From: Klebsormidium nitens
Lineage: Eukaryota > Plantae > Klebsormidiophyceae
Direction of reading: 5' to 3'
Assembly (NCBI GenBank): GCA_000708835.1
Contig: DF236983.1
Coordinates: forward strand, 124,001-188,000
Length of the DNA: 64,000 bases
Shown: in pieces, positions 16,255-45,546 of the stretch
How positions within the stretch are numbered: the first letter of the stretch is position 1
How the letters are laid out: the number at the start of each line of letters is the position of its first letter
The notes under the pieces: generated by a model
Seen by the model: the letters and a program-made list of their open reading frames with translations, nothing else
What the model was told of the DNA's origin: nothing
The model's database searches: none
Program-made: the position numbers and the translations under genes

Positions 16255-21651
<5,397 letters not shown>

Positions 21652-22449
21652 GATTTCACCGGTGATAGTTCGTGCAGCTGATCGGCGAGGCCAGAGCTTG
21701 AAGGAAAAGTAGGTGGAAGAAGTGCTCGTGTGCTGAAATTACCGCTCCTAGATTGCGTCCTTCACACCTCACCAATTTGCTGAAGACGTTTCTGGATGTC
21801 GCTTTCAGTCAGTGGCACTCACTCTCAATGCTGCACAGCCAGTTGCAGCTGCTGAAGAGAAATTTCAATTGGTGAAGTGCAGAGGATCTTGTTTCCTGAC
21901 GACGTATACGGGGCCGTGTCGCTGCGCGTATACGGGTCAACTTTCAACCCTTTCTCCCGCAGAATCTTGGTTCTATAATATCGAATATACTCGCGTAGAC
22001 TGAGCTTATGGGCACCAAATCCTGCAGATTGAAGGTGGGGGTAGTGCGCATGTTCATTAGTCGCGGTAATGGTGTCCGTCGAAGCCGGTACATGCGCGCT
22101 GGATGGGAATAATGTTCGACGTGGAATTGCGAGAGCTCTTCTTTTCTGTGACTCTTCCCGGTGTGACGTACCTACCTACTCAGGTCACGAAACATGCTGG
22201 GGCAGCCGGACCAACCTGACGCCATTTATGATTTTTCCAGTTGCCAATCGATGTCGGCAAAAGCGCCTGGGAAAAGACGCCATTGCTGCAAAACTGGTCA
22301 ACAAGACTAGCATGACCACGACCACAAGGACTGCATCAGCACTCGGCCGAATGCGTTCCCTCATGCTGCTCCGAAGCAGTCATTCTTAGCACCGCCTCTA
22401 AGATGTCATTCGCCGATAATAGATCTTTGTGATTTTCTTCTTGGACAAC

Positions 22450-24140
22450 ATGCAACCGACAGCGGCTGACAAGGTCAGCAGACCTGATGCAGATGACGAG
22501 AGTGCTCCATCCTCGTCAGGCACCAGTTCTCCCAAGTCTTACCTCCTGGTTCACAATGTCTCAAAAAAGCACAATATTGGCACTCTGTCAAGGAGCTGCA
22601 CCGCTTTTGGAGTAACGCAAGTCTGCATTGTGGGGCAGAACGCGTACAACACGTTCGGAAGTCATGGGGCTGCTGAGTATGTTGACATTCGGCACTTTTG
22701 GAAGTTGGAGGATGCAGCAAAGTATCTCAAGGTGAGTGATGGTCTCAAAAGAAGGGTGGTGTAATTTCTGCTAAAGAAGAAGTACTTTTCCTGCCATAAG
22801 CGCCAGTTGGCGCTGCCATGACCTCTATTGATTGTCAAAGCATTGCCTCGTCAATGCTTCCCTGGTTTTATCTTGATTATATTTTTTGGTCCTGCACCAA
22901 GCGCCGCCCTCAGAACCCTAATTTGCAACTTCATAATTTTGCCATATGTCCCTCTGAACGACCACCACCTCTTTATCATACTTGTATCTTGAGCTGTTGC
23001 ATTGCAAGCGTTGACTTGAAACTCCTACGCAGGAAGATTGTCAGTGTGACATAGTTGGAGTTGAGATCGTGGAGGGAGCCCTCGCTGTGCACAAGCGCCC
23101 TTTCAAGAGGAATACTGCTTTCATTCTTGGCAACGAGGTAAGGCCCCACTGATAAATATTGGTGGCATTGGTAGCATCAGTCTTTTGGGCGGCCTGTGGT
23201 ACACCAGTGTGTGCTCTGATTGTGCCTGTGCTTTTTGGTTTCAAACTCTCTTTAGCGACCTCCACTGTTGCCTGCAAAGATGACGGATGGAATGCAATTG
23301 ACGGAGTGCAGGCCCTCAAAGCCTTTCTGGGGCTTACCTCTCACAATACCTGTCAAGCAGCCAGAAGCGTTTCACAACTACCAGCCCCACACATATGCAA
23401 AAGGCAATCATGGTGGTTCACGTAATCAGGGTACGGTTATTGGAAGGTGTTGTCTTTTCTCTAACAAACATGTTGCGTTTGCAGGGCACAGGCCTCTCAC
23501 AGAAGCAGATCGAGATCTGCGATTATTTTGTGTATATATCTCAGTACGGGCCTGGTACTGCTAGCTTGAATGTGACGGTAGCTGCCTCCATAGTCCTCCA
23601 CGCATTTGCTGGTGAGCCATCTGATACCCCTTCAAGGCTTAAAGTGCCTTTGGACCATCTGCCCCGATTCTAGTCTTGAAATATAGCAGTGATATTTATT
23701 TCTTGCAAGCAACTTATGCTTGTGGAGGACGAGGCTTGGCTGACACTATTTGACCTTGTCTTACACATCGAGTTTCAATCTGCGAGTCTCATAACCTTGG
23801 CTACGCAATTCATATTGCTCATTTTCTTGTCGATCCTGCCTCGTTTGATTGAGGTGTTTCCTAACATCGACGACGCATAGCTGCTTTCGATCCCTCCTAT
23901 TCCTGAATCCTTCATCTGGTAAATGCAGTCTGGGCTGGGATGCCCGAAAGAGGCCGGGAAGGGCAGAAGTTCGTGGTGGCAGAGAGACCGGTTCGGCAGA
24001 CGACTAGACGAGTGTGTCAAGATTCGCCTGAGGATGTGGCGGCAGCTAGGAAAGAGAGACAGGCAGCCAGCCTGCAGGATCATAGTGACGATTTAGGACT
24101 GGGGAGCATTGACCTCGAAGATTCTGCAAGTAATGAGTAA
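22450..24140 (+). CDS. SpoU/TrmH-family (SPOUT) RNA 2'-O-methyltransferase, about 241 aa; exons 22450-22731, 23033-23137, 23485-23611, 23929-24140
   Basis: Motif 1-like VHNVSKKHNIGTLSRSCTAFG, motif 2 AFILGNEGTGL and motif 3 SLNVTVAASIVL. Junctions are phase-consistent; the start codon is uncertain. Confidence 0.9.
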
Positions 24141-24875: not shown

Positions 24876-27800
24876 CTATCGTCTAGCGCGCCCATCGCTC
24901 CTCCTATGCTCCTCAATTTTCCTCTTCTTTTGCGCCTGCCGCTTCTGCCCCGAGGCAATCTTCCTCTTAGCCACTCGCTCCGGGTCGACCAGAGCCGCAA
25001 TCGCCGCCTTCCGCTTCCGGTCTTCCCGTGAGACCTTCACGTCCTGACGGACGGCGTTGTATGCGGACACGAAATCGGACACGCCCACGGAGTCCCGGAC
25101 CAGGCCCATCACCTCTTCCGCCAGGGCCTTCAGATCATCTGCACAGCACAGGGGGGCCGTCAAACTGATGGAAGATGCGACCGAGCGATAAACGCTCAAA
25201 AGGGAGGTGGTAATACTCACAAGTGGTAGCGAGTGGAAAGGTCGTGAAACTTGAGGTGGGTGGACACCCATCAAAGTCGGGGCGTGTTTGCAAGGCACGC
25301 AGATACTTCGTCTCTACCCAAAATTCTGATTACTCTAAACAAAGTCCATGGCGTGCCCCCGGAGATCGACGAACCGTTTCCACAAGAGCTTGCAAGCGCG
25401 GACCATGCCGCCAGCGCACGACCACGAAACTCGCCAGCTTCTTGCAGTAGAGTTCGCGCATCCAGAAGAATAAAATGCATCCAATCGTCCGGGTAAAAGC
25501 ACGGGCCAAAAATGGAATATGGTACGCACCTGGCACGGTCTTGGCGGCGTTGCCCTCAGCGAGGCGGTAGAGGGGCACCACCAGCTCGGGGAGGTGGGGC
25601 CGCACCGCAGCGCCGCCCAGCGCGGTGGCCACCGCTGCAAACCACCGCAAAGCGGCCGCGCTCTGCAAATGCGGAAGTATGTTTGAGACCCTCTGAGCGC
25701 ATAGCTTTTGAACCGCTTGAAATTTCAGATCAGCTCCTACCGCTGCAAAATACGGCAAGGGGAGGCGTGTTCTCCCAGAGAGGGGAGGCTCCGAGGGGTA
25801 TGGGACTGACTTGGTACGGCACCCGAAGGTAAAGAAGATCAGCTGTACAAGAGCGGCATCCAAGCAGCGCCGGGCTCCTTCGATCCTCAAAACATCCGTG
25901 AGATGCTCCCAGTTTCGATAAGACGTAGCTCAGGACCCGCAGTGGGCAACAACCCTCCAAGGATACCAAGAACCTCATGTTGCTCGTAATACTAATAATT
26001 CTGTTCAAAGGCTGCGTCACTGCCTCGCGCAGAACCGGCAACGAACTGGGCTGACAATCGCGGATTGAACGTCAAAGAAACGCTGATTCCCTCCGTTGCT
26101 GGATTCGTGCTCACCTGTATTGGCTCCACTCTGAGAGCAATCCTGGCGATCCTCCGGAAAAGCGACTTCAGCGTGGGGCACCGATCCCGCTGCCACCGGC
26201 CCTCTTCCGACCCCGCCTCTAGTTCGTCCTCCTCCCCTGTCTCCAAACCCTCTTCGCCCCCGTTCGCTAACCCGTCTCCTAACCCGTTTCCGGCATGCTT
26301 TCCCTCACTCTCCAGACGCCCGTTCGCTCCATTAACCCCGGGCTTTACCCCGGCCTCCAGCACTGCGTGCATAGCGGTTGCGACGTAAACCAGGTTCTTA
26401 ACCCCCTGTTCCGCCAGCTTCTCGTCAACTACTTCCGCCTCTAGTTGCTGGCACAGCGACGCTGCCACGCGCTGCAGTCCTTCGGGGGGGCTCAGAATCG
26501 TTTCCCCCGCCCAGCCGGGGGGTTCCCTTGTGGGCTGCGGCAGGGCTGCGAACAGCCCCCCCACGAGGCGGCCGGCGGCTTTGCGGACCCACAGGTGACG
26601 ATGGAGCAAATGGGCGGACACGTGCTCCCAGAATGCCTGCGGAAGATCAGGGTTGGGTTTGAAAAGAACGAAGTGTATAAGTGGAGAGAGTTGTGGGGCA
26701 AGCCAACCCTAGTGTGTCTAGATCCGGTTACGATGAAGAGGTGCGGTAAGCAACGAGCCCAGAGGGCTTCGACTCTTGCCGGTTGAGTCAGAGCGGAAAC
26801 CACCTAAACCCTAAAAAGCTTAGGAACGAACCCCTTAAGAGCATGAACGACCTACACCTGAAGCGGCTCAGGAATGAATCTTGATACGAGGGGAACGGAA
26901 TCATGACAGCTGCGCAAAATGACCCGACTTGCCTCACAAAGAGACGTCCGGTGGGAAGAATTGGTGGGAGCACATCAGAGAGATTCCCAATGAAGATTTT
27001 TCGTCCGCAGTCTCCAGAAGGAGTCGGATGTCCCTATCTTCGCTTCATCACTTGTGCTCCAGTCAATAATCGCTTTTCTCGTTGAGGCAGAACATTTTTT
27101 TTGTATCGTTTAACGCCTCGTAAGGACAGCTAATCAGCTAATCAACTAATCAGCTCGAACAACACACGAGAGAGACAACGTCAAGGACTTGTAGAGGCAA
27201 CGTAAACGACTTGCTTGGAAGGCAGAACCGTCGGAGTCTTCAGCAGAAACAATTTGGACTTGCACGTCATTTAGATGTTGTACTTAAGGCGGAGCGAGTC
27301 GAACAATTGAAAGTATGCAGATTCAAGATAAATCTAGTCTTTAACACTAAAACAACCAGATTGCCGAGCTCTTCAGGTTACGACCGTATTGAGACGGATC
27401 CGGCAAAAGCAAGAACATTACTTGTTTGGCAACTGTAACTGAAAAGCTGTGCAGTTCATATGCCCGTTCCATAAGACGAACGCAGGGAGGCCCTGGCATG
27501 ATCAGACAGATTCTTAGGTGGAATAGGGGACTTATGATCACTTTACTTCCAGGTATAGACTCGAGCAACGGGGAGGGTGCGCATCAGAGAGATTCCCAAT
27601 GAAGATGTTTTGTCCGCAGTCTCCATAAGGAGTCGGATGTCCCTATCTTCTTTCATCACTTGCGCACACCTTAACAGATGAAGTACTCTCGAATGAAAGA
27701 CTATCAATGATCTCAGATACGGCCGACCGTTGTCTGGTAGGGACACAAGAAAACAAAGAAGCAGAATTACTGGATGACGAGTGGAGATTCTCAAACATTC

Positions 27801-30800
27801 GTGCTATCGTCTGATGATTTAAAACCCTGAAGAAGCGAGCCCGTTTCGCTAGATTCAGAGCGTTTCGAGACTTGACAGACCAAGACAAAGGAACCGTCAA
27901 GCCATCCCAACGGTGGCGAAGGCAGAAAACAGGAAAAATATCAAGCAGGGTACAAGTGGAGAAGGTTTGAAAACATTATATGACAATATGCATCCTGACC
28001 TGGAATTGCGCGCTCAGCACCAACTCTGGCAGCTTCTGGAAGAGCTTCTCCGCTGACGTCAGCGTGAAGTAAGCCTCCTGCCACATGGGCGCCGCGGGCT
28101 GGCCGTCATCCGAGGGGGATCCCTCCTCTGCTGCCGCCTCGGGGGATCCCTCGAGCGCGTTCTGGCAGCGGTCGAGCATCGCGAGCGCCGCGGCGCGCCA
28201 GGCTGCCACGTGGCGCTTGAAGGCAGGGCCGAGGACCTCGACACCGAAGCCCAGCACCTGCGGATGGGTCAAGAACAAGTTTCAGGAAAGATGAATGCAG
28301 AAACATGATTTTTGGATCAGCAAAGTTGGCAAAGCTTAGGAATAATGCTGACAGCTTGACAGCATTAAAAACCGAACCGGAGGTTAAGAATTTGAAGAAG
28401 TCGAAACAAACACCCAAATATAACAGTCTTCCTTTTCGATACCAATCCAGTTTGCTCTGACCAAGACTTCCGCTCAAGCCAGATGCAATAGACAAGGATT
28501 CAGTGGCTCCGACAAGAAGGACCGGGGTTCAGTAACGGTCGGAAAGTAATCAGAATGTCCCAAGGAAACAAACGAAAGAGCTTTTGCAGATGTTCTGTGC
28601 AGGTAGGTCTCTCACCTGCGCGGCTGGCCGCCACAGCTCGCGCCTCTCCCCTCCATACCACGCCATCGCAAAATCGATCATCCGCTGCCGCGCCGCGCTT
28701 CCCACCCGCCCCATCAGCACTTTCAGAACCGCCCCCACCATCGCGCGGCACTGCTGCTTATCGTCGTTAACCAGGCGGGTAACTAGGGGGAGGAAGAAAA
28801 AGTCGCCGTTCTCGTCGACGATCTCGGGCGGGAACTTGACCAGCACCGCGTGGATCATTTCGAGGGCGGCCTCGCGGCCCGACGGGTGCTCGTACGCGAG
28901 ATTCGCGGCGAGGAACTCTAGGTGTTGCTGCAGGCGGCGCTGGCCCAGGGGGAAGTCTAGAAGGAACTGGAGGAGCGTTTGGCTGCAGAGCGTTCGGACG
29001 GTCGTGTCCTGGCTCCGGACCATAAGCTGCCCGACTCGTATCATAAGATCGTACATCTCGGGAACGACTAGTTTTCGCCCGACGATCGCTTTCAGCAGCC
29101 CGAACGCCGTCGCTCTCGTCGTGCCCTCCTCCAAGTCGATGAAAACCGGCGCAATTAGGATAACCCGCAGCTGGGCTTCGGAAAACTTGGCCTCCTTCCC
29201 ATAGCGCAGCAGGGTGGTTAGGAGCTTCAGGCTTTCCTGAAGGAGAGGCGACGCGGCACGGCCCGACCGCCGAACGATCACAAAGAGCCGGTCCGCAATC
29301 TCGGGTTCCGAAGTCCGGATCGCGGTTAGCGGCGTCCGGACCAGATAACCCAGATTCTTCATCGCGAGGGCAAGCACCGAGTCGTGGCGCGAGTCGAGGC
29401 ACCGGTTAAGGAGCTCGACCATGGGGTTAAGGAGCGGCGCCAGCTTCGGATCTGAGCCGTTGATCTTGTTCCGCTTGAAGCAGCTGTGCATCAACTGCAA
29501 CCCGAACTCCATCAGCATCTGTTGGTTAGGCACGGTTGGCTCCTCCGCGGGGCCCTCTAAAGCTTCCCGCTTCCCCAGGCTGATGCCCACTTTGTCCAGA
29601 ACCGTCTTGAGGTTCCCCCCCGTGGACCGCGCCTGCTTGTCGTCCTTCTTCTTCCTCTTACTGGCCGCCTGATCCGCCTCCCAGGTTAACCCGTCCTCCA
29701 CTAACCCGTGGGTTAACACCAAAACCTCCAGCCCCCCAGTCGCGGGGTTTTGAATCAACCCCGACGCGATGTTCCTCAGCATCTCGTCGAGCTTCCCTTT
29801 GATCTTCGGGTTCAGCGACCGGGGCAGGTTAGCCCTAACCACCCCCACTAACTCCCTGCAAACCGCCGCAAACCCGCCCGCCTGCGCAAGTAACCGCAGG
29901 CTCTCGTACGACATCGTATGCCGCGTCTCCTTCATCTTCTTCGCCAGCCCCTCCACGTCTTTTTCCTCTCCCGTTTCGCCCAAAATGTCCTCTTCGATGA
30001 TGGGAGTCATTCCTCCCAGGCAGTAGTCGATCTCGCCGCTCTTAACCGACGGCAGGGTTTTGACGAGAACCGCGTGCAGGGTGTAGCCGAGCACGTGGAC
30101 CTGGTAGCCGCGAGTGAGGCTCGACGAGAGCGTCTCGACGATGAAGTGGAGGTACCTGAGGGATTGGCGAGAAAGTAGTGAACACGGGAAGCCTGTAGAC
30201 GTCCTTCGAGACCGCTTTTCTCCATAGTCAACCTAGCCGATCAAAAGTCTGATTGTTGAACTCTGACGGCCTTTGGAGGTGCGTAGCGTGATGGTGACGC
30301 GGGCTTTGGAAAAACGAATCAGCATCCACCTTAGTGAACGAAACTAGAACGTCGGCCGGCTTCAAAGTCCGATGTTTTCGTGGATACGAGTCACGAAAGG
30401 AGGGAATGTCAGATGCTGAGGAGTGAGATGTTCAGTTTCCAGCACTCAAGGTGACGCTCGTGATCTCGTCAGCTTTCGAACCGAGTCAGCTTCAAGTTGT
30501 TGCAACTCTAAGCGATTCGCCCGCTCTCACCTGGCCCCCAGCGCCTGCGCCGCCGCCACGATGGCCCCCCTCGCCGCGTCCCTGACCCACTGCGCGCGGC
30601 TCTTGAGCAGGTTCGCCACCTCGTGCAGCAGCCGCGGCAGCTCCACCTCCATCGCGCGGGGGGGGAGTAACGCCAGCACCTGGACCAGGGCCAGCGTTAC
30701 CGGGGTGCTCACCAGCCCGTCGTCGCCCTTCTTGTCCGGCTCCTCGATCATGCTCTTGCGCAGCTCGGGGAAGACGCGTTTCAGCAGCAGGGCCTGGATC

Positions 30801-33800
30801 GGCCCCGGAACGAGCCTCCCCCCGGCAGACTTGACGCCCGCATTTGCTGGAGTGGCGGTTCCGGGCGTTTCCGGCTCCGTTCCGGTACTTCCCGGCTCCG
30901 TTCCGGTACTTTCCGGCGTTCCGTTCGCTTCTCCGCCGTGGGCGCCGCTTCCTTTTTCCCCCGCGTCTTTCTCACCCTCGTTTCGCTTCTGATCGCCATT
31001 TTCCGTTCCGTTTGACTTCGCAATCTGACCCCCCGTCTGCGCGTCTAGCCCCAAAGTCACACCGGGAGGTGCAACCGAACCCCCCACCCCGCCCCCGCCG
31101 GTTCCGCCCCCCTCGCCTACCCCAAGGACTGTCCCCACGAAGCGCTCCTCGTTGGGACCCTCCTCCTCGCCGACAAAGAAGTGGAACCGTTCCAGCACCC
31201 CGCAAACCGCGCGCACGATCGCGCGCTGGTGCGGGACGCCCTTGCCTGACGTCAGCTTGAAGAGGCGCATCAAGAGGCCGTAGTAGGTGCCCCACTCTAG
31301 TTGGCCCGCCATGGTGGCGATTGCGGCGACCGCGGCCTCGACCAGGTTGCCTTCCTTGTCGCCCTTGGCCTCGAAGAGCGATTGCGAGAACAGCGGGACG
31401 AAGATGGTCATCAGCGAGCCCTGCAGAACAGTCGTCGGAGTGATGTTCAGCAGAGAGAAGAATGAAGCTGTGAGAAAGACAAGCAGAACCTGCGACTTCG
31501 TTCAACCAAAAGGTGTAGGCACCTGATTGTGCCAACGGCTCAGTAACTAGCCCAAGCACTGCAGACCTCCTTCTCACATTCTTGAGGGATCCGACAGACA
31601 GAGATCACTATTACACAAGAATATTGCTTTCGTTCGAGTGTGAACGTGTGGTACGAAAGAAGAGGCCCGACCACCTAACCCAGCAACCCAGCAAGCACCT
31701 CAAGAATGATTAAACGCCGTCGAGCTCTTGTCGTAGCCAACCGAACCCCATGCACATGTAAACGAAAGACTGGAAACCTTGCAAAACCTTGGAACCGTGA
31801 ACCCCGAAAGACGTGAGACCATTTTAGAGTTCCGAACTGCAACAAGCCCCGGATCGTACAAACCATGCCCACCTGATGGAAGTGGCCCTGGTCGCAAAGC
31901 GCTCGGAAGCGGCCAATGGCGCGGATACGACGGTGGACCTGCAGGTGCACGATGTTGTGGAAAACGTCCGCCTCTAGATCGTCGGACAGCAAGCTGCGTA
32001 GGCCGGCCAAGGACGGGACGCCGGGCAGCCGTGCAATCATCTCCCTGCAACAGGCACAGTACCCGAGAGTGTGAGTTTAACAGAAAAGTGGACTGGTGTG
32101 AGAATGTCAAATGAGGATGCCAGGGTGAAGGGTCGAAATCCACCCCCTCACAACTGAGCGGACATACCGATGGCAGAGCGCAATCATTTCTCTGCATCGA
32201 GCACCGTGCGGGGAGTGTTTCAGGACGACGACACTAGAGACCGGTCCAAATTTCTCAACAAGAGATTCGAATGAAGGGTTACGAACTGGCTCTAAGGATT
32301 GACAGGAGGATTGCAGTGTGGAAACTAACGGTGACATCAGCGTTGGCTTCTGCGAAAGGGGCAGGTTCGGCCGAATTTCGCAACCACTGCAGTCTGTAGA
32401 TTTGCAAAGCGGTGTGGCGAAGGAAACCGCACGAAGTCGTAAATAAGGATCACACAGAGAAAACCTGCCCGGGAACAAGGAGGTACGGCAGCCGTTTACC
32501 CACCTGAACAGCAGGACGTACTCCCGGCGCACGACCAGGCTCTCAGACGCCAATCCCCTCCGGACATGTGGCAGCAGCAGCCGGGTTACTAGAGCCACCG
32601 CACGGGGCCCATCCAACGGTCCATTCTCTTCAAGCCCTTCCGCGGCCCCCGGTTTCCCTACGACCGCATTCACGCCCGTCGCCTCCGCCTTAGCAGCAGG
32701 AGCGCTCACACCGCTGACGTCAGCGTCCTCTTTGCTGAAGGCAGCACCTTCAACGTCGTCCTCCTCCATGACGTCAGCCTCCGCGCCGCCGACGTCAGCA
32801 TCCGCCGCAACGAGCCCCTCGTCAGCGTCGACGTCTGCCCCCGGTGTGCCGGACTCCGCTATTGTCGCCATATACCGGATGAACACCTCGATTGCATGCG
32901 CGGCGGAACTGCGCAGCGAGAGGTCGTCCTCTTGCATGTCGTGCAGGCACTGCCCAAGCACCAGCTGCGCTTCGAGCCGCGTCATCTTCTCGAGTTCTCC
33001 CGACTCTAGTTTCCCGTATGCGTCCAGCCGCCGGCCATAGTCGCACTCGTCAATGCCCGACGGGTCCATTGCGTTCAGGTCAGAAAGCAGACCCGCGACA
33101 CGCGCTAACCCAAGCTTAACCCCGCTCGAACCTGCGGCATATCCGTGGGTTACTCTAACCTCCACGGGCTGAACGGCCGACCCCTCCGTGAGTTGCATGG
33201 GAGCAGCCCTTGAAATTGCAGAAACCTCAGGTGAACCTCGCCCGGCTAACCCCTCCAACGCCCCGCTGAGCGCTTTCCTCGCCTCTCTGGTTTGCAGCGA
33301 GATGAAGAGCGGAGCCAGGATTGGCACGCACTGCGCCACGCTCTCGGGTTCCAGAACCCGACCTAAACCCTCCAGAACCCTGAGCGCCGCCGCGCACGCC
33401 TCCTCGTCGATCTTGCGCTTCCCCCCGGGTGACCTCAGCAGCGGCATCAGCGCTGACGTCAGCTGCGCCGCCGCGTCGCCACCTGTCACGTGCCGGCTGA
33501 CGGTGACCAGGATCGCGAGCTCGCGCCGGAAGGAGGGCTTGCGGGTTTTGCCGGCCCCAGGGTGATCCCTCTGGAGCGTCAGAAGTTGCTGGAGGTTGGT
33601 CAGCAGCAGGGGGAGGTGCGGCAGTAGCAACTGGTCCTCTGATGTTACCCCCCCCTCCGAATCCATCTCCAGCAGGTTTTCTACTATCGTCAAAACCGTT
33701 CCGATGACGCCTTGAGAGGCGCCTGGAATCGAGAGAACGGACAGCAGACCGGGAACTAGGTTGGGGTCGAAAGCCAGGAGTGGCGCCAGGGCGGGGTGCC

Positions 33801-36800
33801 GGCTCATGGCCAAGAAACAGGTCAGCAGTGCGCTGGGCTTGTCGCTGCTGGCGGAGTCGTTTCTGATTCGGGCAATGGGCCCCGCCATTGCGGCGAAGAA
33901 GAGCGCCCAGTAGCTTGGGGGAGCTGCTCTTAGGGTGTTTCGCGCCTCGGGTTCTAGGGTCTTGGATTTCAGGGTTTCGACTTCCGGGGCAACTAGAGTC
34001 GGGAAACGGGAGAGCACGGAGGAGAGCACACGCAGGGACAGCGAGCGAAGGTCCTTGTCGTTGCCTCCCGCTGGATGCGAAGAACCCGCTCCTTGCTTTC
34101 CTGGCTTCTCGCTATCTTCCTTCCGTTCTTGGCTACCATTTTGACCTCCATCCTCTTCCCGCCCATCCGTCTCATTCAGTCCCGCCTCCAGCGCTTCAGT
34201 CGTCTCGATCCCAACCACAGCAGCCGCCGGCACTTCGCCGCTTTCGTCCGTGTGGCCCCCCTTATCTGCCCCGTCTTCGACCCCCCCGTTTTCCCCCCCG
34301 TTTTCCTCCCCGGTCTCCACCCCCCCCGGAGTTGCCCCGTCTTCCCACCCCCCACTCCGTCCAGCGCTCTCCAGAATCCTCACCGTCACCCCCAGAAGCC
34401 CATGCAGGTACGGCCCCAAAAGAGCTTCCCCCCAGCTATCAATAAGCTCCCGCGCCATATGCAGAAAGCCGACGCGCCGTTTATATGGCACGGCCGCCAG
34501 CTTATCCGGGTCCACCCGCTCAAGAAACGAGGCCCCCACTCCGCTTTCTAGCTCCCCCTCCCACGTTTTGGAACCGGGCTCGGTTTGCAAGGCCCCAAAA
34601 CCCGTAACTGGGGCCCCAGTTCTAAACGCGGGGCTCAGGGGCTGTAATAGAAGCTTGAAGAACGGAGCGAGCTCGCGCGGGTTCATCCTCGCCAAGAAGC
34701 CGAGCACCGCTGCGCGCGGCACGCCGGCAGTCGCCTTATTGGTCTGCTTGGTCGCCTTTTTCTTCAGCTTGGGGTACATGATGTGGATCACCACGCGCAT
34801 CAGCCCCCCCCGGTGCTCAGCCAAAACGGCCCCCCCGTCTGGGCCGATGTCCCAATGTGTGATCTCGTCACGCGCCGTTTTGGGCGCCACCAACCGCTGC
34901 AGGTTCTCGGCGTAGGGAACTAGATCGGGGTCTTTCCAGTTGAGCAGGCACGCAAGCGCCGCCTGCTGGACGGCCGGGTCGCTGTCGAGCAGCAGCCGTG
35001 ACGTCAGCAGATCCTTGACCTCCGCTTGCCGGAACAGCGAGCGCGCATTCCGCAGCTCCTCGAGCAGCGCCAGCCAGTGCTTCAGCCCCTCCCGCCACGC
35101 TTTACTTCCCCACACGATACCAGAAACTGACTCTCCTCCCTCTAGTTCGTCCATGTCTTCGCCCACGGTTCCGACGGCCTTGGACGGGCCCCCAAGCCCG
35201 AAAGTCTTGCTTTTCGGGATGTGAGCGAAATCTAGAAGAAGGGGGACCACGTGGCGGCTGTGGGCCTCTGCCACGTGGGCGGACTGTTGGAGAGTCCTAA
35301 GAAGGAGTCCGGTGACGGTGGGGAGGTCGGTGCCGTCCAAAACAGGAGAAGCTGCTGCTTCGAAAGAGGTCTCGAGATCTGCGGAAAGCAATGGAAGGGC
35401 TGCAATGTCAGCTCCAGGCGCTTGAGAGTGAACAGCTGGAGTATCGGGCATTTTTGACAGCAGAGAAAGATTTCTCATTGGAACAGAAAGCGTGGCGTTC
35501 TGAAGCTCGCGAATGACCCGTGCTCTCTTGACAACGTGCGTGCTGTCAGAAGTGTACCACCACACACGTTTCCTTGCTGCTCGGCAACCTATTGAACTGC
35601 TTCCTTCAAAGAGGACAGTCGCGGTCGAAAGTATGCCAGCTTTGAGGCAGCCAAACCCAGGCAGTCACATGCTTAAGCAATTCTGAATCTCGAAGCTCAA
35701 AGCAACACGTGATCGTGCCAAACGTCGGGTTCACAGACAGAAACTCTTCACAACCGATCGGAGCCAGGAAAACCCCGGTCAGAGCCAAGCAACGCCAAAC
35801 GCTGTTCTGATGACATCAGCCGCTCACCTTGCACTGCTTCTCCGCCGTTCTCTTCATCCCCTTCCGTCGGAGCCCCCCTTCCGCCACTCTCCCCCCTGAG
35901 CCACGCCGCCTGCGTCTCCTCCAGGTCAGCTAACACCGCAGGCCACACCACGAGGGGCTCCTTCACACCCTGACGCCCCCGAGCCTCTTCCTCCTTCTGC
36001 ACAGCGGTGTACACAGGCACTCAGAATTATCAGGAGTCGGGCAGTCGGGCAGTTGGGCAACCAAGTCAGCGGGCATCAGAACCGATTGGGTTGGGTGGCA
36101 GTTGAAAACTATTTGGTGGTGGAATTGAACCCGTTTAGGTGGCCAACACAGTTCCACTCGACATCATCACTGTTTACTCGCAACAAACTGTTGCTCTACT
36201 GCTCACGACCTCAGGATCAAGTCCTCAGAGCCTGGAAGTCGTCAGCATGTGACGCGTTACCAGCATTATATGACGTCAGGTCCTACCTGTAACAGCGCAG
36301 CCAAGGTCTCCCTGGCCGCGTCCCACAGCAGGCTGAACCGGATCCTCAGCACGCCCAGCATGGCCTGCGCCAGCGGCTTATGATAAGCGGCCGGTAGCCT
36401 ATCGGCGACAGCGTGGACGCGCAGGCGGGTTATGACGGAGCTGCTGTGGCGGCAGTCCTCCAAATTGAGAGGGGCGGTCTCAATCTCCAGCACTTGCTGG
36501 AAAAGCTGCAAGCAGAAAACGAAAGCTGGGATTTAGACATGTGGTAATTTGGAGGCAAAGGGTGTAAGGGGCTAACCATGTAGCCGAGTGCACTTGCAAG
36601 AACTAGCAGCTGCTAAAAGGCTGCCGAAAGCGAAGGCCTTGTGGGACATCGAAGGCTCGTTTAAGGGAATCTTCAGTGGCAAGAGGTTTCGTAACCTACT
36701 TCGAACAGGTGCTTGGTCAGTTTTTTGTTCCCTCTTGCGCCAATGACCCTTTTCGACACAGCTACCTCTAAGTTCCTTTTTGACACAGCTAACTCAACGC

Positions 36801-39800
36801 TTTGACTGCTTCCATTTCCCCACCTTAAAGTCACGCGCTCCTGGCAAGTCAAAATCCTCACGAATGAACCAAGTAACATACGTACTGTGGTCGAAAGCAG
36901 AAACAAAGAGCAAACACAAGCAACACGTAGGAAAGCAAAAGGACAAGGATTTTAAAGAATTAAACAGGGCTCAAAGCCCTCACCAGATACGGCTCCCCCG
37001 TGCTCTGCTCCTCCTTTTTCCGCTTCTTGCCCACTTTCCCAGACTGCGTCTCCTCCTTCTCCGCAACGGGTGACGTCAGCGGGTCGAAGGCGCCAAGGAC
37101 CCGGAGAGTGGCAATGCGCAGCTGCTTGACGGGGGAGCGCAGGTTGGGGTGCAAGAGTTCGATGAAGGCCAGGCCGTCGTTTTGGGAGAGGAGGGGCCGG
37201 GCCTTGGACAGGTGCTTGGGGGACCTGCACGACAATTCTTGGTCGGTTAGACAGGTCTGCGTATGATAGACTTCTGCAAGAGCAGGGACAAGGAGAAACA
37301 GTGTCTGCACGATCGGGTCCGAGGACACCGGTGGAAACGTATTTGTGACGTAAGGCTGGCCCCTAAGTTGGTTCCAAGCATCGGATGGTCTCGAGAACGC
37401 AAGTTGTCGGTTCAAGTGACACCCTAAGTGGAACCTGCACGGGTTGAGCCTTGGTGTCTCCGAGGCACGTGGGTAGATTGAAGCCGTCATATCTGCGTCT
37501 TGAAGCATTAAAGCCTGAGGGCACCCGCCATGGCACCAAAGTCCGACACAGACACCGTACGTCCAAACGCGTCCCCGGCTTCGATTCTGCGAAGACTGTT
37601 TCTCCTTTCCGGGCTCTGAGAGACACTCGCGTCCTGGCGGAACATCTTCCAAGATGAGAGCTGGTTCCAATGGGAAACGAACGGTGTTTTCAGAAAGCGA
37701 CGGGAGGCTCACAAAGCTGGAGCGAACAATCGCCGACTCTCCAAACACCGTGCAGACCGTATCAAAAGTATCGAGGAAATGATGCCTGATTGTAGTTCCC
37801 GTGCAACAAAAGCGTCCATTGTCTCCGAAACCTCCAGTAGACACCTCGAGCAGTAACGGACGACTTGGACGGTTGATATCAACACAAAACTCGCTCAAAA
37901 CGCCAACGACAGGGAGACCCTTACCCTCTGATGATCCCTAGAAAGTCCGCCACAGCTGCCATAACCTGCGGGCTGCTGTATGCACTCTTCGCAAGCTCCA
38001 AGTACGCCTCCGTGTGTTTCACCAGGCTGCCCTGCTTGCTCCGCTGTAAGAATGCGGTGTGGACTTCAAGAGCCGCGCCCAAGAGCGCCTCGAGCCGCGC
38101 CGTCGCCTTGCCGGAGGGTTTGGAGGGTTTAGACGGGGGAGCGTCAGGTTGGCTGCTGCTTGTGCTGGCTGCAGAAAAGTGGGCGTCGTCGGTTAGAAGC
38201 ATGCCACAAAAGTTGTTGAGCGGATGCAATAAAAAAGTGATGAGACGACTTTTCAGAGCTTTGAAGAGAGGATCCACAACTCCACGGGAAAACACTCTCA
38301 ACGAAAGGCCAGCTTTTCTGTGTTTCAAGGCCTTGAGGAGACGTTGAGAATGGAAAACGAGAGCTGCTAAGCTGTCGTGACCACCTTCGGTACAAAGCGG
38401 ACTAATTGTGTGATCAAATCGTGAGGACGAAGTAAGCTCCATAAGATTTATCGTCGTTGCTTGCAGAGCAGCCTCCACAACAAAAACGAAGCGTGATGAA
38501 GCAAGCCGTACCTTGAGCATGGGACTGCTGCCTCTCCGCGTCAGGTTTGTCGCCGTCCCCCAGCTGCGCCCTCACACTTTGCACCAAACCCCAAACCCTC
38601 TGCGCGCCCGCGTCCGCATCGCCCTCCGCATACGGCAAAAGTCGCACGGCAGCCCAAACCTCCGCCAAACCCTGCCCCTCTGCCGCCGTATATCCCGCCA
38701 CCGCATTGGTAAGATATCGCACCAGATTCTGGTGCTTCCCGTCTCCCCCTCCTCCGGACTGAGCCAAAAGCAGGGGGGTAGCCAAGGGCGTGGGCTCGAT
38801 TCGCCGGCAGGTTGCCAGGAGCAACGGAAGCACGGGCGTCGGATGGCCGCCGATCAGACGGTCCAGGGACGTCAGCATCGAGTGTGCGAAGAACGGCAAT
38901 GAATATGCTCGGGCGGGGCTCAGGAGCGCTTGGAGAAACGGGATGAGGTTCCGAGGGTTGGAGAAGTCGAAGGCGGGCTGCCACATGGTAGCAGCTCGCG
39001 CCACGGAGGAGGGCCCTTGGCTGGCGCCCGCAATGCGCTCGTGGCTGGCGATTAACGCCAAGAGTAACCGTAGGGTTTCTTTCTGGAGCGTCGGGGTTTC
39101 TTCGAGTTCGGTCCCCAAACCGGGTGCTAACCCGGTGCCTGAACCATCTTTGGTGTTTATGAAAATCTGCGGCTGCAGCAGTGACTGAGCGAGAGCGAAG
39201 AGTGGTCGGTAGTCCAAGACCCGAGAACCCCGGTGGTGCTCCACAGCGTTGTTCAGCAGATGCAGCGCCCGGGCCAAGTCCTCCCGAGCACTCCCCCGGT
39301 CTGCACCTTCAGCTGCGTCCGAACCGCCCATTACTCCGTCCGGTTTGTCCGAAACCTTGTCCGAGGCGTCCTTAACCCTGTCTGGTTCATCCAGACCCTT
39401 CTCCGAAACCATCTCTAATAGCCCGTTGACTTCCCCTAACAGGCATTCCCACATAACCCCGCTCTTTTCCCGGGTCGTGTTCTGGCACACCCGCTCGACC
39501 GCCTCCGCGACCACCGCCACCGATACTGCTGCATTCGCGGCCGCGTCCTTCTGGGGGTTTCCTTCCGCTGCCATTGTCACCCCCCCGTTCAGGGTGGTTC
39601 TGTCCAGCATCAGTTGGAGGAGCTCGGGGGCCTTGCTATGGAGGCCTCCCTTGGCGCCTCTGACGGTGTAAGCGAGAAGAGCGCCCATGCCGGTTATCTT
39701 CTCTTCGGTGGGGTTCTTCTGAGCCTCCTTCATAAGGTGGCGTACACCTGCAAACGGAGACCAGGTCTTATAAGCTTGAGCAGCTAACTCGGGCATTAGA

Positions 39801-42800
39801 TCGGCACGTGATGCTCAACCACTCGTCTTTGGGATGCAGAACCAGAGGAAGTGAAATCACAGTCTATACAGAATGGTACAGACACTGTAACCCACTTGTG
39901 TCGAATCCATTGAGCGAAGATACATGCAGGGTTGGAAATGCAATCTGCTTGGCAACAGCAAACATCGGTACGCCTGCCAGAGCTGCCAGAGCGTACAATT
40001 ATACATTTTAGGAACGGTCTTTTGAAGCTTTCCCTCCTCAATAACCCTGAAAAAACATCTTTCGGCTACACCGAGCTCCGCTGCCATGTGCCATCGTCGA
40101 GTACACCAGAATCTATCGAATTCTGAATGGCCTGTATTTCAGCATTTTATCGAGCGACCAGTGTTTAGAATCGGGGTTACGTTGCTCTCACCTTTGATGA
40201 GCTGCTTCAGGGGGGCATTGCGGAAGAGGAAGGACACTGCCTCAGCTGCGAAGTCCCGGACGTAGTCCCGCCGGTGGTAGCGGATCAGCCGGGTGTATCT
40301 GCAAGAGGAAAGAGCTTAACGATTGAGTCATTGCGAACCTGCACGATACGTGAAAGGGACAGCCTCCCTTCTAGGAGTCGTTTGAGAAAAGGGAAGGCTT
40401 ATTGAATTGTTTGAGAAAAGGGAAGGCTTATTGAGAATCCATACATCTCTTCCGAGTGGCCTAACGAACAGCATTTTGCAAGCGGCAGCAATTTTTTGTG
40501 GACGTGACCCAGGAGTTGGGCCGAGAAAGCTAGATGTAGCGACACCCTGTGCAAACATGTGCCAACCCAGTCCTGCGTTTCGAGTTCACCAACTGCAGCC
40601 CTCCGCTGACAGAAGCGGAAAGTCATATCAGAATTAGCCTCTGGAAAGCTTTTGGAGTTGTTGATAGACTCTTTGGAGGAAACTGAAGAGACATTTGGAC
40701 GAACGGAAAGGAATAACAGCTAGACTTTTCTGGATATCATACCATTCCGCTGCATCTTCCCACTGGCATGAAAGACGGGAAACAAGAAATCAGGTCAGAC
40801 CCTCACTTGAGCGCCTGCGTGAGGTCTTTTGCGAGGTACTTGACGAGGTGCTTGAAGACGTACGACACGGACGTGAAGATCTGCTCCAGGACGTCCGGCT
40901 CGCGGTCCGCGCCGCCCTCCAGCAGCCGCAGGCACGCGCCCAGGAACGGGGCCACGAACGGGAGGAAGTCCTCGCGGAGGTCGCGCGAGAGGACGGCGAT
41001 CAGGCTGCGGAGGACAACGAGTGTGCTCTAAGACTCTGCTTTAGAATTTCAGTTTTTCACGGTTGAAATGTTTGACAACATTACTGCTCAGAATCGGAGG
41101 CCGACGTAGGGCAGAAAATGAAGTCGGTAGATGTGAAAGAACAGGGTGGTTTTTGCAAGAAGGAGGGTGTTAGCTTTTAGCTATTCAAGTGTCGAGGACA
41201 AAAGGGGTAGTAACTTTCAGCCAGACGGCCTGAAAACGGGCTGAAGACGATCGATTGCTCTTGCAAGGATTGCCGACGGGAAAACCCAACATTAACAAAG
41301 GAAAACCGATGCAGCAGGTTTGCGCTTTAGCTTTTGCAATCTGGACACTTCGTTGACACCTCATGAGAGAGAAACAAAACCTGGCCGACTCTGAGTAACG
41401 ACGTTAAGAGAGGTCTGACAGAAAATCGTCCGAAAAAGCGACACCGGCACAACAGCCTCGCTACGTTTTCGACCTCCAACTGCTGACAGTGCGCATCAGA
41501 GAGATTCCCAATGAAGATTTTTCGTCCGCAGTCTCCATAAGGAGTCGGATGTCCCTATCTTCGTTTCATCACTTGCGCACTGTCGCCTCTCATGAGTTCT
41601 TTCACGAGAATTGCTCGAGAACCTGAGAATCTCCCAAAAGGCTCCAACGATCCAAATTTGAAAAGTGAACATACGACTCCGAATCCTGCTGAAACAACAT
41701 CTGCATCTGTAGAACAAGCCTGCCAAGTCAGAACCAACCTCAGAGTCAAGAACAGATAGTGTGATTTGCTATACTGGCCCGTTCCTCTGGCCAAGAGCTG
41801 ATTCCGGCACCGATCTCCAAAGCAACAACCCGGCAGATGCAGTGTTCACAGTTCTGTGACCCCCCTTCGCTAACCCGTTTGCTGAAGATCTTCTCCACCT
41901 GAAAATATCCTCACGTTGAAAGTTCACTCAGCCCTGCCGGTAATCCTGTTACCCCTGAGTGCGCCAGCCCCAAAACAGTTCCGACTCAGAAATTGTCGAT
42001 CCTAGGAATCCGAACCACTTGGAAGCAGGAGCATCCACAAGTATCATTACTACACAGATCGCTGCGGGGCTCCCAGACTGCTTCCTACACTGACCTGCAG
42101 GGCAGGCTTTTGTTGAAATCATACCTGCTTTGCTTCTCTCAGGAGCTGCGACAAATGCAAGCTTGCTATTTCCAACCAGATTTTGCAAGACTCTCCGGAC
42201 TGACTGACCTCAGGACGGGCTCCAAAGAGAGGAGCGCTCCAATGTGCATCCTGGCGAGCAGGGCTCGAACGACCGTCTTCTTGTGCAGCAGCAGCTGCGG
42301 CAGGCTCTGCACCAGCGGGTACACCTCGCCATACAGCAGGTTGAAGTCGGCCGCAGTGTTGAGCTCCTGCAGAATGGGACAATAAAACCGTGTGCATTCT
42401 GTCAACTTGGGTGTCTGTTGTAAGAGGAAGACCCCCAGATCTAAGAGTTGAATGACTTGATATTGAGAGGGGGGCCAGGGGTGGCGGAGCATATGATAGA
42501 ATCTTGCATATATATATGCACCCACTCAGAGACAGGAAGAAGCACGTTGTAAAGCCAGCTCGAGCTCCTTCTCAATCGGTGTCAAACGACTGCTGTCCAC
42601 CAGCTAAGCCTGTCACTCTCTCAAAACTTAGATCCTAACAACACTCTGAACCCAGTCTGTGCGCTGCATGAAAATTTCCTTCGGCAGTGAATCACTTTTA
42701 CACCACCACCACCAATATCCACAATACGAGTAAGTCATTTTTAGGAACTTGAATTTCCCCTGAACGCTTCTGATCACCAGGTGATCAGACTGTTCGCATC

Positions 42801-43676
42801 GCCGCTTCTACATATTCAGTGTGTATGTGTAACTAGGTTGGGCACATATGTCCTGCCACTCACCCTCCATTGCAGCAGATTCTCTTGGAAGAACGATGTC
42901 CCGGCGGTCGGTTCAAACTTGACGGGCGCAAGGCTCCGGAACACATCGACGTCGACGCTGGCGACCCGCTGGGCAAAGCTCTTGAACTGCACGAGCGGGG
43001 GCAATCGTCTGAGAAGCGACGACAGAAACTTGTACGATGGAGTCCTTCTCTGGTCCTGAAGCAATCTTTGAAAACTAAGGTGGGAATTACAATTGAAAGC
43101 ATGAAAAGCCAGTGAGGTGGTATGGCCAATGACTGAAATAAGCTCAATAGGGAATGTAATCCTTGATGGTGGTAATATTAGAAACCAAAAGTTAGAGCAC
43201 AAATTTGCATGCTGCACTGTCCAACTGCATGATTCAACTTTACCAAGAAACTGAGGCTGATGGAATGCAACATCAGAAGTGCCCTGTCAAACAAAGAAAC
43301 TTCCATGTAGGTATGGTTGAAACCCGCAACGTTTGCGGGCAAAGCTACCACTGCCTCTGTGAACCTTGACAAGAAGAAGCAACCACCACCCTTCAATCAT
43401 AATAAGCCCTATCGACAAGGAACTTGGTGGTGTTGCAACATGGAATACTGTCAACACCACCAATTCGAGTCACTGCCACCACTACTTTCAAAAATCTCCA
43501 GCACCACCATTACCAAAATCTGCCTCACAGTTCCTTCAATCAACCAGTACAGCATGGTGCACCATCAACCGTGACCAATGCTGCGACAAAGTTGGTGGCA
43601 AGCTTACCACAAAGCGCTTCGTCCCTGGCCCGGAGTAGGACTTGTTGAGCGACTTGATTTGTCTTCCAGACGCCAT
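24876..43676 (-). CDS. UTP20: U3 snoRNA-associated protein 20 (SSU processome HEAT-repeat protein, DRIM domain), about 18 exons
   Basis: N-terminus MASGRQIKSLN...KRFV|FKSFAQRVASVDVDVFRSL...FFQENLLQWR|ELNTAADF. DRIM-region motifs include LTRGYQVHVLGYTLH, KMKETR and LAYEHPSGREAALEM. The basic C-terminal tail is ALVDPERVAKRKI...KKRKIEE. The large ORFs 38414..39796, 32107..35565, 30527..31411, 28550..30094 and 25992..26621 are exons. Confidence 0.93.
26967..27060 (-). ncRNA. Intronic box C/D snoRNA, copy 1 (dual guide for LSU rRNA; U79/U74-snR64-equivalent sites, plant snoR44-like)
   Basis: Minus strand reads GGAGCACA a GTGATGA...AGATAGGGACAT CCGA...TGGAGA...CATTGGGAATCTCT CTGA TGTGCTCC. It has boxes C, D', C'-like and D, an 8-bp terminal stem, and two guides antisense to the conserved LSU segment GAGAUUCCCACUGUCCCUAUCU. 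Confidence 0.9.
27127..27155. repeat. Short tandem repeat, about 3.5 copies of CAGCTAAT
   Basis: cagctaatcagctaatcaactaatcagct, read directly in the UTP20 intron. Confidence 0.7.
27577..27667 (-). ncRNA. Intronic box C/D snoRNA, copy 2
   Basis: Same boxes and identical guides as copy 1. Terminal stem GTGCGCA/TGCGCAC. Lies in the same UTP20 intron (about 26640-27998) as copy 1. Confidence 0.9.
40380..40434. repeat. Local tandem duplication (26-bp unit, 29-bp period) in a UTP20 intron
   Basis: gtttgagaaaagggaaggcttattga occurs twice. Confidence 0.9.
41487..41582 (-). ncRNA. Intronic box C/D snoRNA, copy 3
   Basis: Same boxes and identical guides. 9-bp terminal stem CAGTGCGCA/TGCGCACTG. Lies in UTP20 intron 3 (41005-42208). 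Confidence 0.92.
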
Positions 43677-44468
43677 CCTTGAGAAAGTTATAGCTCCTGA
43701 TGCAGCCAAAGAGCGGCCACAATCAACCTCCACCCATTGAGCAGTCTCTTCAAGCTTTCGTCCTGCGCACTTCAGATTTGAGCTTCTGCGTTCACCCCCC
43801 CATCAACTTCCACTTCAACTTCAAGCTGGGAGTGGCTGCATGAGATCAGTTTGGAGTCTGAGGCTTCTTAAAAGTTTAGAAGCCTGACATCGAGAGTCAA
43901 GGTCTGCCTGAGCATGTCCGGTAACGATTCTTCGTGTATGGGAACGGTTTGCGTCAGGACCTGGGCTACGTACCCATGACTCTGAGCTCATAGAGCTCTG
44001 CGATTGAGGTGAAGGCGGACGCAGTTTTGAAGAGAGGCTGGGGCGCTCGAGTGGCAGGTTGATTGGCGCCCGGCACAGTTGATAGGACCTTGTCGCTCTG
44101 CATGGGCGCTGGTTTAAGCTGCCATTCTTTGGCGAAGGTGCCTCTAGCACGTGTCTAGCACACGGTTGATTGCTTCGCTTGGAACAAGCACGGCAGTTCC
44201 TCGAGAGCGCTGGTCCAGTTGCTCCGCATGCAAGTTAAGCGTGTGATGTGACCCCTTGTGCTGCTGCTTATAGACGACGTGTGTGTAGCGGGAAAGATCT
44301 AGCCGGCGTTCATAGGTTGGAGCTTAGGTGCAACACAGACACTGTTTCATAGAGAGAGATCTGCACTTACCGAGGGGCGGGCTGATTGTTTGCGCAAATA
44401 TTAGAGATTTTTGGTCGTTACCAGCAGTGGTCAGCAGCGGAAACAAGGGTCATTCAGCTCAGCCAGCT

Positions 44469-45546
44469 ATGTCTGGGGTGGATCACGGGCGGGAGCCTTG
44501 CCCCGACCGGATCTTGGATGACATCGGCGGTGCGTTTTCCATGGGTGCCATCGGGGGCTCAGCATGGCATTTTATCAAGGGAATGAAGAACTCGCCCAAG
44601 GGGGAGCGCTTCCTTGGCGGGACTCAGGCGGTGCGGCTGAACGCGCCCCGGATAGGCGGGAGCTTTGCGGTGTGGGGGGGGCTATTCTCTACTTTCGATT
44701 GCTCGATGATCTACCTCAGGTAATCGGACTTTCCTCTGTTCGCTGTCGTAATAAAACCCTACTCTTCAGTCAGGGGGCTTTGGCTGAGAAGGTCCCTGTA
44801 GTTTTTCCCCCCCTCGCGCGAAGATTTGTTTCAAGCAATTCTTTGCACACCTCCGTTTGAGCGGCGACTTGCTGTATCGTGACAACATCATGCAGGTGAA
44901 TCCGACAGTGTGGTGTCTAGCACTCCGATAGTGTGATATAGCACTAGCGATGCGCTATCTCCGTCCGTTGAGGCGGATGCTTTTTGCAAATAGTTCTCTG
45001 TCTCGGAGCTATCCCAATGTTCTGGGCCTTACCCTTTCTGATTTGTGCAGGGGTAAAGAGGATCCATGGAACAGCATTGCAGCCGGAGCAGCAACTGGTG
45101 GGTTCCTGACACTGAGACAGGGGATGAGGGCCAGTGCCAAAAGCGCAGCTTTCGGGGGCGTCCTTCTGGCCCTGATCGAGGGGGCAGGGATCATGTTGAA
45201 CCGCATGACGGCGAACATGGCGCAGCCTCCGCCTGAGCCTCAGCTAGCTGGCGTGGGGGGCCCAGCCATTCCCGGGGGCTATAGAGCACCCGCCACTACT
45301 TACCAGCCCGCCGCAGCAACCCCGTCCTACTACCAGACCACCCCCAGCCCTGCCCAGCCCTATCAAGGTCAAACTCAGACACCCCCCTCAGCCGCCGGTC
45401 CGGAGCAGAGCACGGGGTCTTGGTTCGGGGGCTTGTTTGGAGGTAGTGCAAAGAAGGAGACGGAGGAGAAGAGCCCGTTCAGCTTTGACACGGCGCCGCC
45501 ACCCATGCCGCCAGAGTTTGCGGGAGATGATAGCAGATTTAAGTAA
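44469..45546 (+). CDS. TIM17: Mitochondrial inner-membrane translocase subunit TIM17, about 248 aa; exons 44469-44719, 45051-45546
   Basis: [47 protein letters not shown] and R|[19 protein letters not shown], followed by a Pro/Gln-rich C-terminal extension. Confidence 0.96.

Follow-up and report, generated by a model that had tools for sequence, protein, structure and literature searches.

UTP20 introns of the alga Klebsormidium nitens carry three copies of a very probably functional snoR44/U79-family box C/D snoRNA gene

In box C/D small nucleolar ribonucleoproteins (snoRNPs), the core proteins bind the kink-turn of boxes C and D, and the base-paired nucleotide that fibrillarin methylates is the one opposite the fifth position upstream of box D or D′. 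Arabidopsis snoR44 (AtU79) is a small nucleolar RNA (snoRNA) with two antisense elements that guide the methylation of 25S ribosomal RNA (rRNA) at Am2327 and Cm2338, both mapped by RiboMeth-seq (PMC8583080; PMC8053127). The equivalents of the two sites are targeted by human U79 (Am3809) and U74 (Cm3820; both in the old numbering) and, for the C, by yeast snR64, and the targets of U79, U74 and snR64 are among those of C/D snoRNAs traced to the last eukaryotic common ancestor (PMC3511168). In one survey, snoR44/U79 was traced no further back than the ancestor of flowering plants, and land-plant snoRNAs had hardly any homologues in algae (PMC5122169). In the green alga Ostreococcus tauri, introns house 72 of the 131 snoRNAs, and ribosome-biogenesis genes are the hosts of 33% (PMC7671301). 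Here, we describe three intronic elements (copies A, B and C) in the UTP20 gene of Klebsormidium nitens, which lies in a window of 64,000 nucleotides (nt) of DNA (assembly GCA_000708835.1, contig DF236983.1, positions 124,001-188,000 of the forward strand); all positions below are those of the window unless another contig is named. We consider it highly likely that copies A, B and C are paralogous, functional genes that encode a single dual-guide box C/D snoRNA of the snoR44/J54/Z268 family and are transcribed within the UTP20 pre-mRNA, with RNA accumulation, methylation and the processing route being predicted from the sequence.

The features of the locus are as follows.

24876-43676, minus strand: UTP20 host gene; approximate span of the coding sequence with a predicted start codon, based on Pfam hits and collinearity with UTP20 of a related alga described below.
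26636-27998, minus strand: UTP20 intron with copies B and A; 1363 nt, GT..AG, spliced joint 26635/27999.
26969-27058, minus strand: snoRNA copy A, RF00357 at 54.9 bits; second member of a tandem pair in RNA order, 519 nt downstream of copy B.
27578-27666, minus strand: snoRNA copy B, RF00357 at 57.8 bits; upstream member of the tandem pair in the RNA, with 332 nt between it and the 5′ splice site.
41005-42208, minus strand: predicted UTP20 intron with copy C; 1204 nt, donor AG/GTCAGT, acceptor ..CCGCAG/C.
41490-41579, minus strand: snoRNA copy C, RF00357 at 61.7 bits; ~41485-41584 when the 11-bp terminal stem is included.

All three copies exceed the Rfam gathering score of 48 bits for RF00357 (snoR44/J54/Z268), and each match spans the whole model, positions 1-97 of 97. 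RF00357 belongs to clan CL00069, alongside human U79 and U74 and yeast snR64. Each copy contains boxes C (GUGAUGA), D′ (CCGA), C′ and D (CUGA), two guides and a terminal stem of 7-11 bp that joins boxes C (RUGAUGA) and D. In the folds, the terminal stem is 8 bp in copy A (GGAGCACA/UGUGCUCC), 7 bp with an outer extension in copy B and 11 bp in copy C, whose fold has a z value of -3.3. Relative to copies B and C, the stem of copy A has two double changes, both of which preserve pairing (G-C to A-U and U-A to A-U). An alignment of 20 family members, consisting of the three window copies and 17 homologues fetched from metagenomes, reveals covariation of the terminal stem: both sides are changed in 10 of 11 pairs, the observed values were reached in none of 500 shuffles, and slid controls gave lower values. 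An internal hairpin, CUCC-UUAU-GGAG, is present in each copy, and the sequence just 3′ of it, CUGCGGA, lines up with AUGAUGA, AUGUUGA and AUGCAGA of the 17 homologues and is thus assigned as box C′. Five positions between boxes C and D vary among the copies, all five of which are located in spacers or the loop (P ~0.005 under random placement), while the boxes, guides and hairpin stem are invariant. The initial annotation, an earlier reading of this DNA, had described terminal stems that differ yet stay paired and variation that avoids boxes and guides, and both descriptions agree with the folds, the double changes in copy A and the distribution of the variable positions. Its boxes C, D′ and D are also correct; the C′-like box that it placed at TGGAGA is rejected, since the alignment with the 17 homologues identifies this segment as the 3′ arm of the internal hairpin. 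The covariance-model search that it had suggested assigned all three segments to RF00357 above the gathering score. Its idea of a hidden new RNA does not hold, because the RNA is a member of this family and an orthologue of Arabidopsis snoR44/U79, human U79/U74 and yeast snR64.

The rRNA targets were predicted with a published top-strand oligonucleotide of insect 28S ribosomal DNA (rDNA), ACGAGATTCCCACTGTCCCTATCTACT (PMC1919474); a yeast rDNA primer confirms part of this stretch. The target stretch had no match in a scan of viral contigs, and the sequence was taken from the published oligonucleotides. The D′ guide pairs with the insect oligonucleotide over 11 bp, and the fifth-nucleotide rule selects a C (C17 of the oligonucleotide), while the D guide pairs over 10 bp and the same rule selects an A (A6). 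The predicted C and A are 11 nt apart, and the selection of an A and a C at this spacing agrees with the mapped sites of Arabidopsis snoR44. An assignment of the stretch as the U24 site was rejected, since the literature and the 11-nt spacing identify it as the snoR44/U79/snR64 site. The family membership and the complementarity to the insect sequence are consistent with a methylation guide for large-subunit (LSU) rRNA, as proposed in the initial annotation.

Copies A, B and C are the only such elements detected in the window. A pattern of the 36-nt core with up to three mismatches matched exactly these copies (chance expectation, 0), and a scan of both strands for boxes C and D with a terminal stem of 5 bp or more recovered solely the same three. 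An Rfam search relaxed to E values of up to 1, which covered those H/ACA snoRNAs that Rfam holds, matched no other part of the window to any family, and the C/D scan likewise gave no further snoRNA. Pairwise identities are 90.5% (A-B), 95.5% (A-C) and 96.7% (B-C), and the similarity is confined to 88-95 nt. The flanks of the three copies do not align with each other and contain no A-rich tails or flanking direct repeats.

The host gene was identified by matches of minus-strand exons to Pfam UTP20_N, UTP20 and UTP20_C and confirmed by a protein atlas search; the exons were searched singly. Since spliced contigs join 26635 to 27999, skipping 1363 nt, copies A and B share one intron. This joint is present in contigs of four out of four runs from four studies (region 26400-28300), with a sequencing depth of 29-300 in the exons versus 0-8 in the intron. 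For copy C, the donor is located at 42209/42208 after the exon ending ..LSLEPVL, and the acceptor ..CCGCAG at 41005/41004, where the next exon begins with (S)LIAVLSRDL... These exons align to residues 57-107 and 110-169 of human UTP20 and 56-107 and 110-171 of yeast Utp20. Because they are contiguous in the human and yeast proteins, no exon is missing between them. Three minus-strand elements of ~90 nt, lying sense in UTP20 introns between unrelated flanks, had been postulated in the initial annotation. The pattern search and the C/D scan place them where it had them, the similarity ends with the ~90-nt unit, and the intronic position follows from Pfam, the spliced contigs (A and B) and exon homology (C). 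In one run, an intronic contig over copy A (26833-27054) has a depth of 8.4, compared with ~2.5 in neighbouring intron contigs. It stops ~4 nt inside the 5′ end of copy A. As contigs cannot show RNA ends, this is no more than a hint at a processing intermediate.

A related alga carries the same snoRNA in its UTP20. Its gene was found through the protein: a full HMMER search with a large UTP20 exon yielded a fragment that is 69% identical, on a contig (L077 and L078) of JGI metagenome 3300060284, a sample evidently outside the contig collection scanned for guide pairs below. The two UTP20 genes are collinear, and their exons are 72-87% identical in DNA. The gene of the relative contains six snoRNAs, all on the host sense strand.

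L077:8288-8372, plus strand: SNORD24/U24 homologue, UTP20 sense strand, 61 bits.
L077:16938-17029 and 17366-17457, plus strand: two snoZ103 copies, UTP20 sense strand, 44-47 bits.
17689-17778, 21949-22038 and 22727-22816 of the relative's contig: three RF00357 copies, UTP20 sense strand.

The RF00357 copies at 21949-22038 and 22727-22816 are located in the intron after the exon ..ELVLSAQFQ, which is the orthologue of the window intron 26636-27998. The RF00357 copies are the sole non-exonic blocks conserved between the two genes. The comparison of orthologous introns that the initial annotation had recommended thus gave three RF00357 copies, two of them in the orthologous 3′ intron. The relative's counterpart of the copy C intron is empty, and its intron with three snoRNAs (two snoZ103 and one RF00357) corresponds to a 370-nt empty intron in the window. 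Since the window counterparts of the introns hosting U24 and snoZ103 are short and empty, the two species host different sets of snoRNAs. In the alignment of the window and L077 copies, the RF00357 copies are more alike within each species than between species, with species-specific shared differences such as GGAGACUGCGGA in the window versus GGAGGGUGCGGA in the relative, whose C boxes are UGAUGG, not UGAUGA. At the sequence level, this pattern suggests gene conversion or repeated duplication, so that the paralogues in one host gene may have evolved in concert. UTP20 of another NCBI genome assembly (L079, 37% identity) contains no Rfam snoRNA.

To place the family in other lineages, we scanned metagenome contigs for the guide GGGACATC, a gap of 25-55 nt and the guide TGGGAATCTCTCTGA, which yielded 76 loci with 97 copies. 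The window UTP20 exons had no tblastn match in any of the 76 loci. Among the guide variants compared (GAUAGGG, GAAUAGGG and GACAGGG), the D′ guide is GAUAGGG in the window and GACAGGG in angiosperm-like loci. In four moss-like loci (L025, 6044-6128, minus strand; L043; L073; L054), one RF00357 copy (53.9 bits) lies on the same strand between HSP90 exons that cover Pfam positions 125-205 and 204-254, and it is thus located in an HSP90 intron. Angiosperm-like loci contain tandem clusters, such as L009 with three R44 copies, Z267 and snoR122. Another HSP90 gene holds, at the corresponding intron position, a degenerate copy that is probably a paralogue in decay (L014:4439-4507, plus strand). It has the C box GGGGGATGA and a D box followed by AGC, is interrupted by telomere-like CCCTAAA repeats inserted mid-copy and scores too low for the Rfam threshold. 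Similar degenerate copies in L021 and L030 lack the CCCTAAA repeats. L035 (287-373, 1139-1225 and 1313-1399, minus strand) holds a same-strand cluster of one RF00357 copy and two copies of snoR1 (RF00345). The RF00357 copy in L007 (5687-5790, minus strand) is lengthened by a large internal insertion. Its position, flanked by a BipA/TypA-like gene and an RPB1 gene that has no introns, is apparently intergenic, and the genome looks compact and algal.

From these data, we propose the following course for the RNA. The copies would be transcribed as part of the UTP20 pre-mRNA, and fibrillarin and the other core snoRNP proteins would assemble on boxes C and D, closed by the terminal stem of 7-11 bp. 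The guide preceding D′ would pair with ...UGUCCCUAUCU... of LSU rRNA, and the guide preceding D with ...GAGAUUCCCA..., placing 2′-O-methyl groups on the C and A, which presumably correspond to Cm2338 and Am2327 of Arabidopsis 25S rRNA. Copy C would be freed from one intron, and copies B and A from a single other intron, probably by an endonucleolytic cut in the 519-nt spacer followed by trimming, as in plant and algal intronic clusters.

We regard the elements as functional snoRNA genes because the gathering score is exceeded, the C/D boxes and stems are present, the stems covary, the guides pair with rRNA, the variation is constrained, the location is intronic and sense, and the elements are conserved in the relative. 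Several points weigh against this conclusion. The intron around copy C is predicted from homology and splice consensus rather than from reads. The runs are assembled contigs, apparently of mRNA libraries, in which the introns appear only as low-depth pieces, and they cannot resolve a discrete RNA of ~90 nt. The complementarity was measured on the insect 28S oligonucleotide, with the yeast primer for part, and not on K. nitens 25S rRNA. Boxes C′ (UGCGGA) and D′ (CCGA) are degenerate. This degeneracy would also be expected if one or more of the copies were decaying duplicates and the working gene lay elsewhere in the genome, an explanation that draws further support from the degenerate family copy in the moss-like HSP90 intron of L014 and from the fact that the copy number is known for the 64-kb window only. 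However, the boxes are intact, the guides invariant and the terminal stems paired in all three copies despite unalignable flanks, the compensatory stem changes in copy A argue for selection on copy A itself, and the pair is kept in the orthologous intron of the relative; we therefore consider decay very unlikely.

The unrelated flanks and the exactly snoRNA-sized duplicated unit could also point to a dispersed mobile repeat, for example a snoRNA-derived retroposon, that fell by chance into UTP20. A dispersed repeat should occur in both orientations and at non-intronic sites, but the window contains only three copies within 64 kb, all in one gene and in one orientation. The copies lack A-rich tails and flanking direct repeats, the guides match rRNA, and the window variant is carried by none of the 76 metagenome guide-pair loci, so that a mobile origin of this kind is scarcely credible. 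The position within UTP20 would be incidental in another way if the copies were driven by their own promoters within the introns. Land-plant snoRNAs are mostly produced from independently transcribed clusters (PMC5122169; PMC7671301), and the copies are located 333-942 nt from the 3′ splice sites, both of which would suit such promoters. On the other hand, all three window copies and all six snoRNAs of the relative's UTP20 lie on the host sense strand, and low-depth contigs span the intron continuously with the host transcript. No promoter was identified in the introns, though no promoter scan was made. Independent transcription thus seems improbable, and we favor functional genes transcribed with UTP20.

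The layout of the copies bears on how these intronic genes would be released. Vertebrate intron-encoded snoRNAs are located ~65-85 nt upstream of the 3′ splice site. The window copies share with them the sense orientation in an intron of an RNA polymerase II host, but not the other two features: copies A and B occupy the same intron, 26636-27998, and the distances to the 3′ splice site are 333 nt (copy A), 942 nt (copy B) and 485 nt (copy C). The initial annotation had invoked the vertebrate pattern, of which the intronic, sense position in a ribosome-biogenesis gene stands, while the one-per-intron layout gives way to that of plant and algal clusters. Chlamydomonas and rice reportedly have intronic clusters with more than one snoRNA per intron, implying endonucleolytic separation (work of Chen and colleagues in 2008 and Liang and colleagues in 2002). 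At least two snoRNAs on the same strand of one host intron are found here with copies B and A and likewise in the relative, with two snoZ103 and one RF00357 in one intron and two RF00357 in another. Two snoRNAs in one intron cannot both be freed by end trimming, which calls for an endonucleolytic cut in the spacer. Given the shared intron of copies A and B and the long distances of all copies from the 3′ splice site, release probably follows the plant/algal endonucleolytic route, and the vertebrate splicing-coupled route with one snoRNA per intron does not fit. For mammalian intronic snoRNAs, long outer stems have been linked to splicing-independent assembly; the long outer stems that the window copies build from unrelated flanks fit such a need.

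Beyond UTP20, the window contains a Tim17-family gene (44328-45546, plus strand, at least two exons) that is divergent from UTP20. The two genes may share a promoter region, as ~0.8 kb separates their coding starts.

Neither the RNA family nor its targets and clan are new, and O. tauri provides a published precedent for snoRNAs in introns of ribosome-biogenesis genes (PMC7671301). UTP20 as a snoRNA host appears to be new within the literature searched, in which we found no paper dedicated to K. nitens snoRNAs. The locus adds annotated, target-assigned snoRNA genes to K. nitens and places snoR44/U79 in an alga, in contrast to the flowering-plant-only dating of one survey (PMC5122169). Together, the UTP20 introns of two algae, the HSP90 intron of moss-like loci and the tandem clusters of angiosperm-like loci illustrate neatly, on a small scale, how an ancient guide RNA can switch hosts and yet keep its targets, while the general understanding of snoRNAs is unchanged. 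A coupling of small- and large-subunit maturation through the UTP20 host is speculation. We also raise, as a tentative and rather doubtful idea, that UTP20 may be a long-standing, evolving "nursery" host in the algal lineage, with spread between introns, gene conversion within species and dosage tied to the transcription of a factor of the small-subunit processome. If so, this lineage would be intermediate between the animal-like intronic and the land-plant polycistronic organisation, and the RNA would have changed its host to HSP90 in mosses and become part of independent clusters in angiosperms.

Human U79 and U74 both reside in introns of the non-coding GAS5 gene. The window copies resemble human SNORD79 (U79) and SNORD74 (U74) and yeast snR64 in the clan, CL00069, and in the equivalent rRNA positions. 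However, the two guides are in two separate snoRNAs in humans, whereas both are in one RNA in the window, whose host is a protein-coding ribosome-assembly gene. The closest likeness is to Arabidopsis AtsnoR44/AtU79 (RF00357), with the same covariance-model family, dual guides, 25S targets 11 nt apart (Am2327 and Cm2338) and a hairpin between D′ and C′. Unlike the angiosperm genes, which form tandem polycistronic clusters and have stems of 4-5 bp, the window copies are intronic in a protein-coding gene, have stems of 7-11 bp and contain a more degenerate C′ box. The presence of more than one snoRNA in a single intron is shared with the intronic clusters of Chlamydomonas and rice. In O. tauri, two or three snoRNAs occur in consecutive introns of one host, and almost all snoRNAs are single-copy (PMC7671301), whereas UTP20 of K. 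nitens hosts one family in three copies, two of them in one intron.

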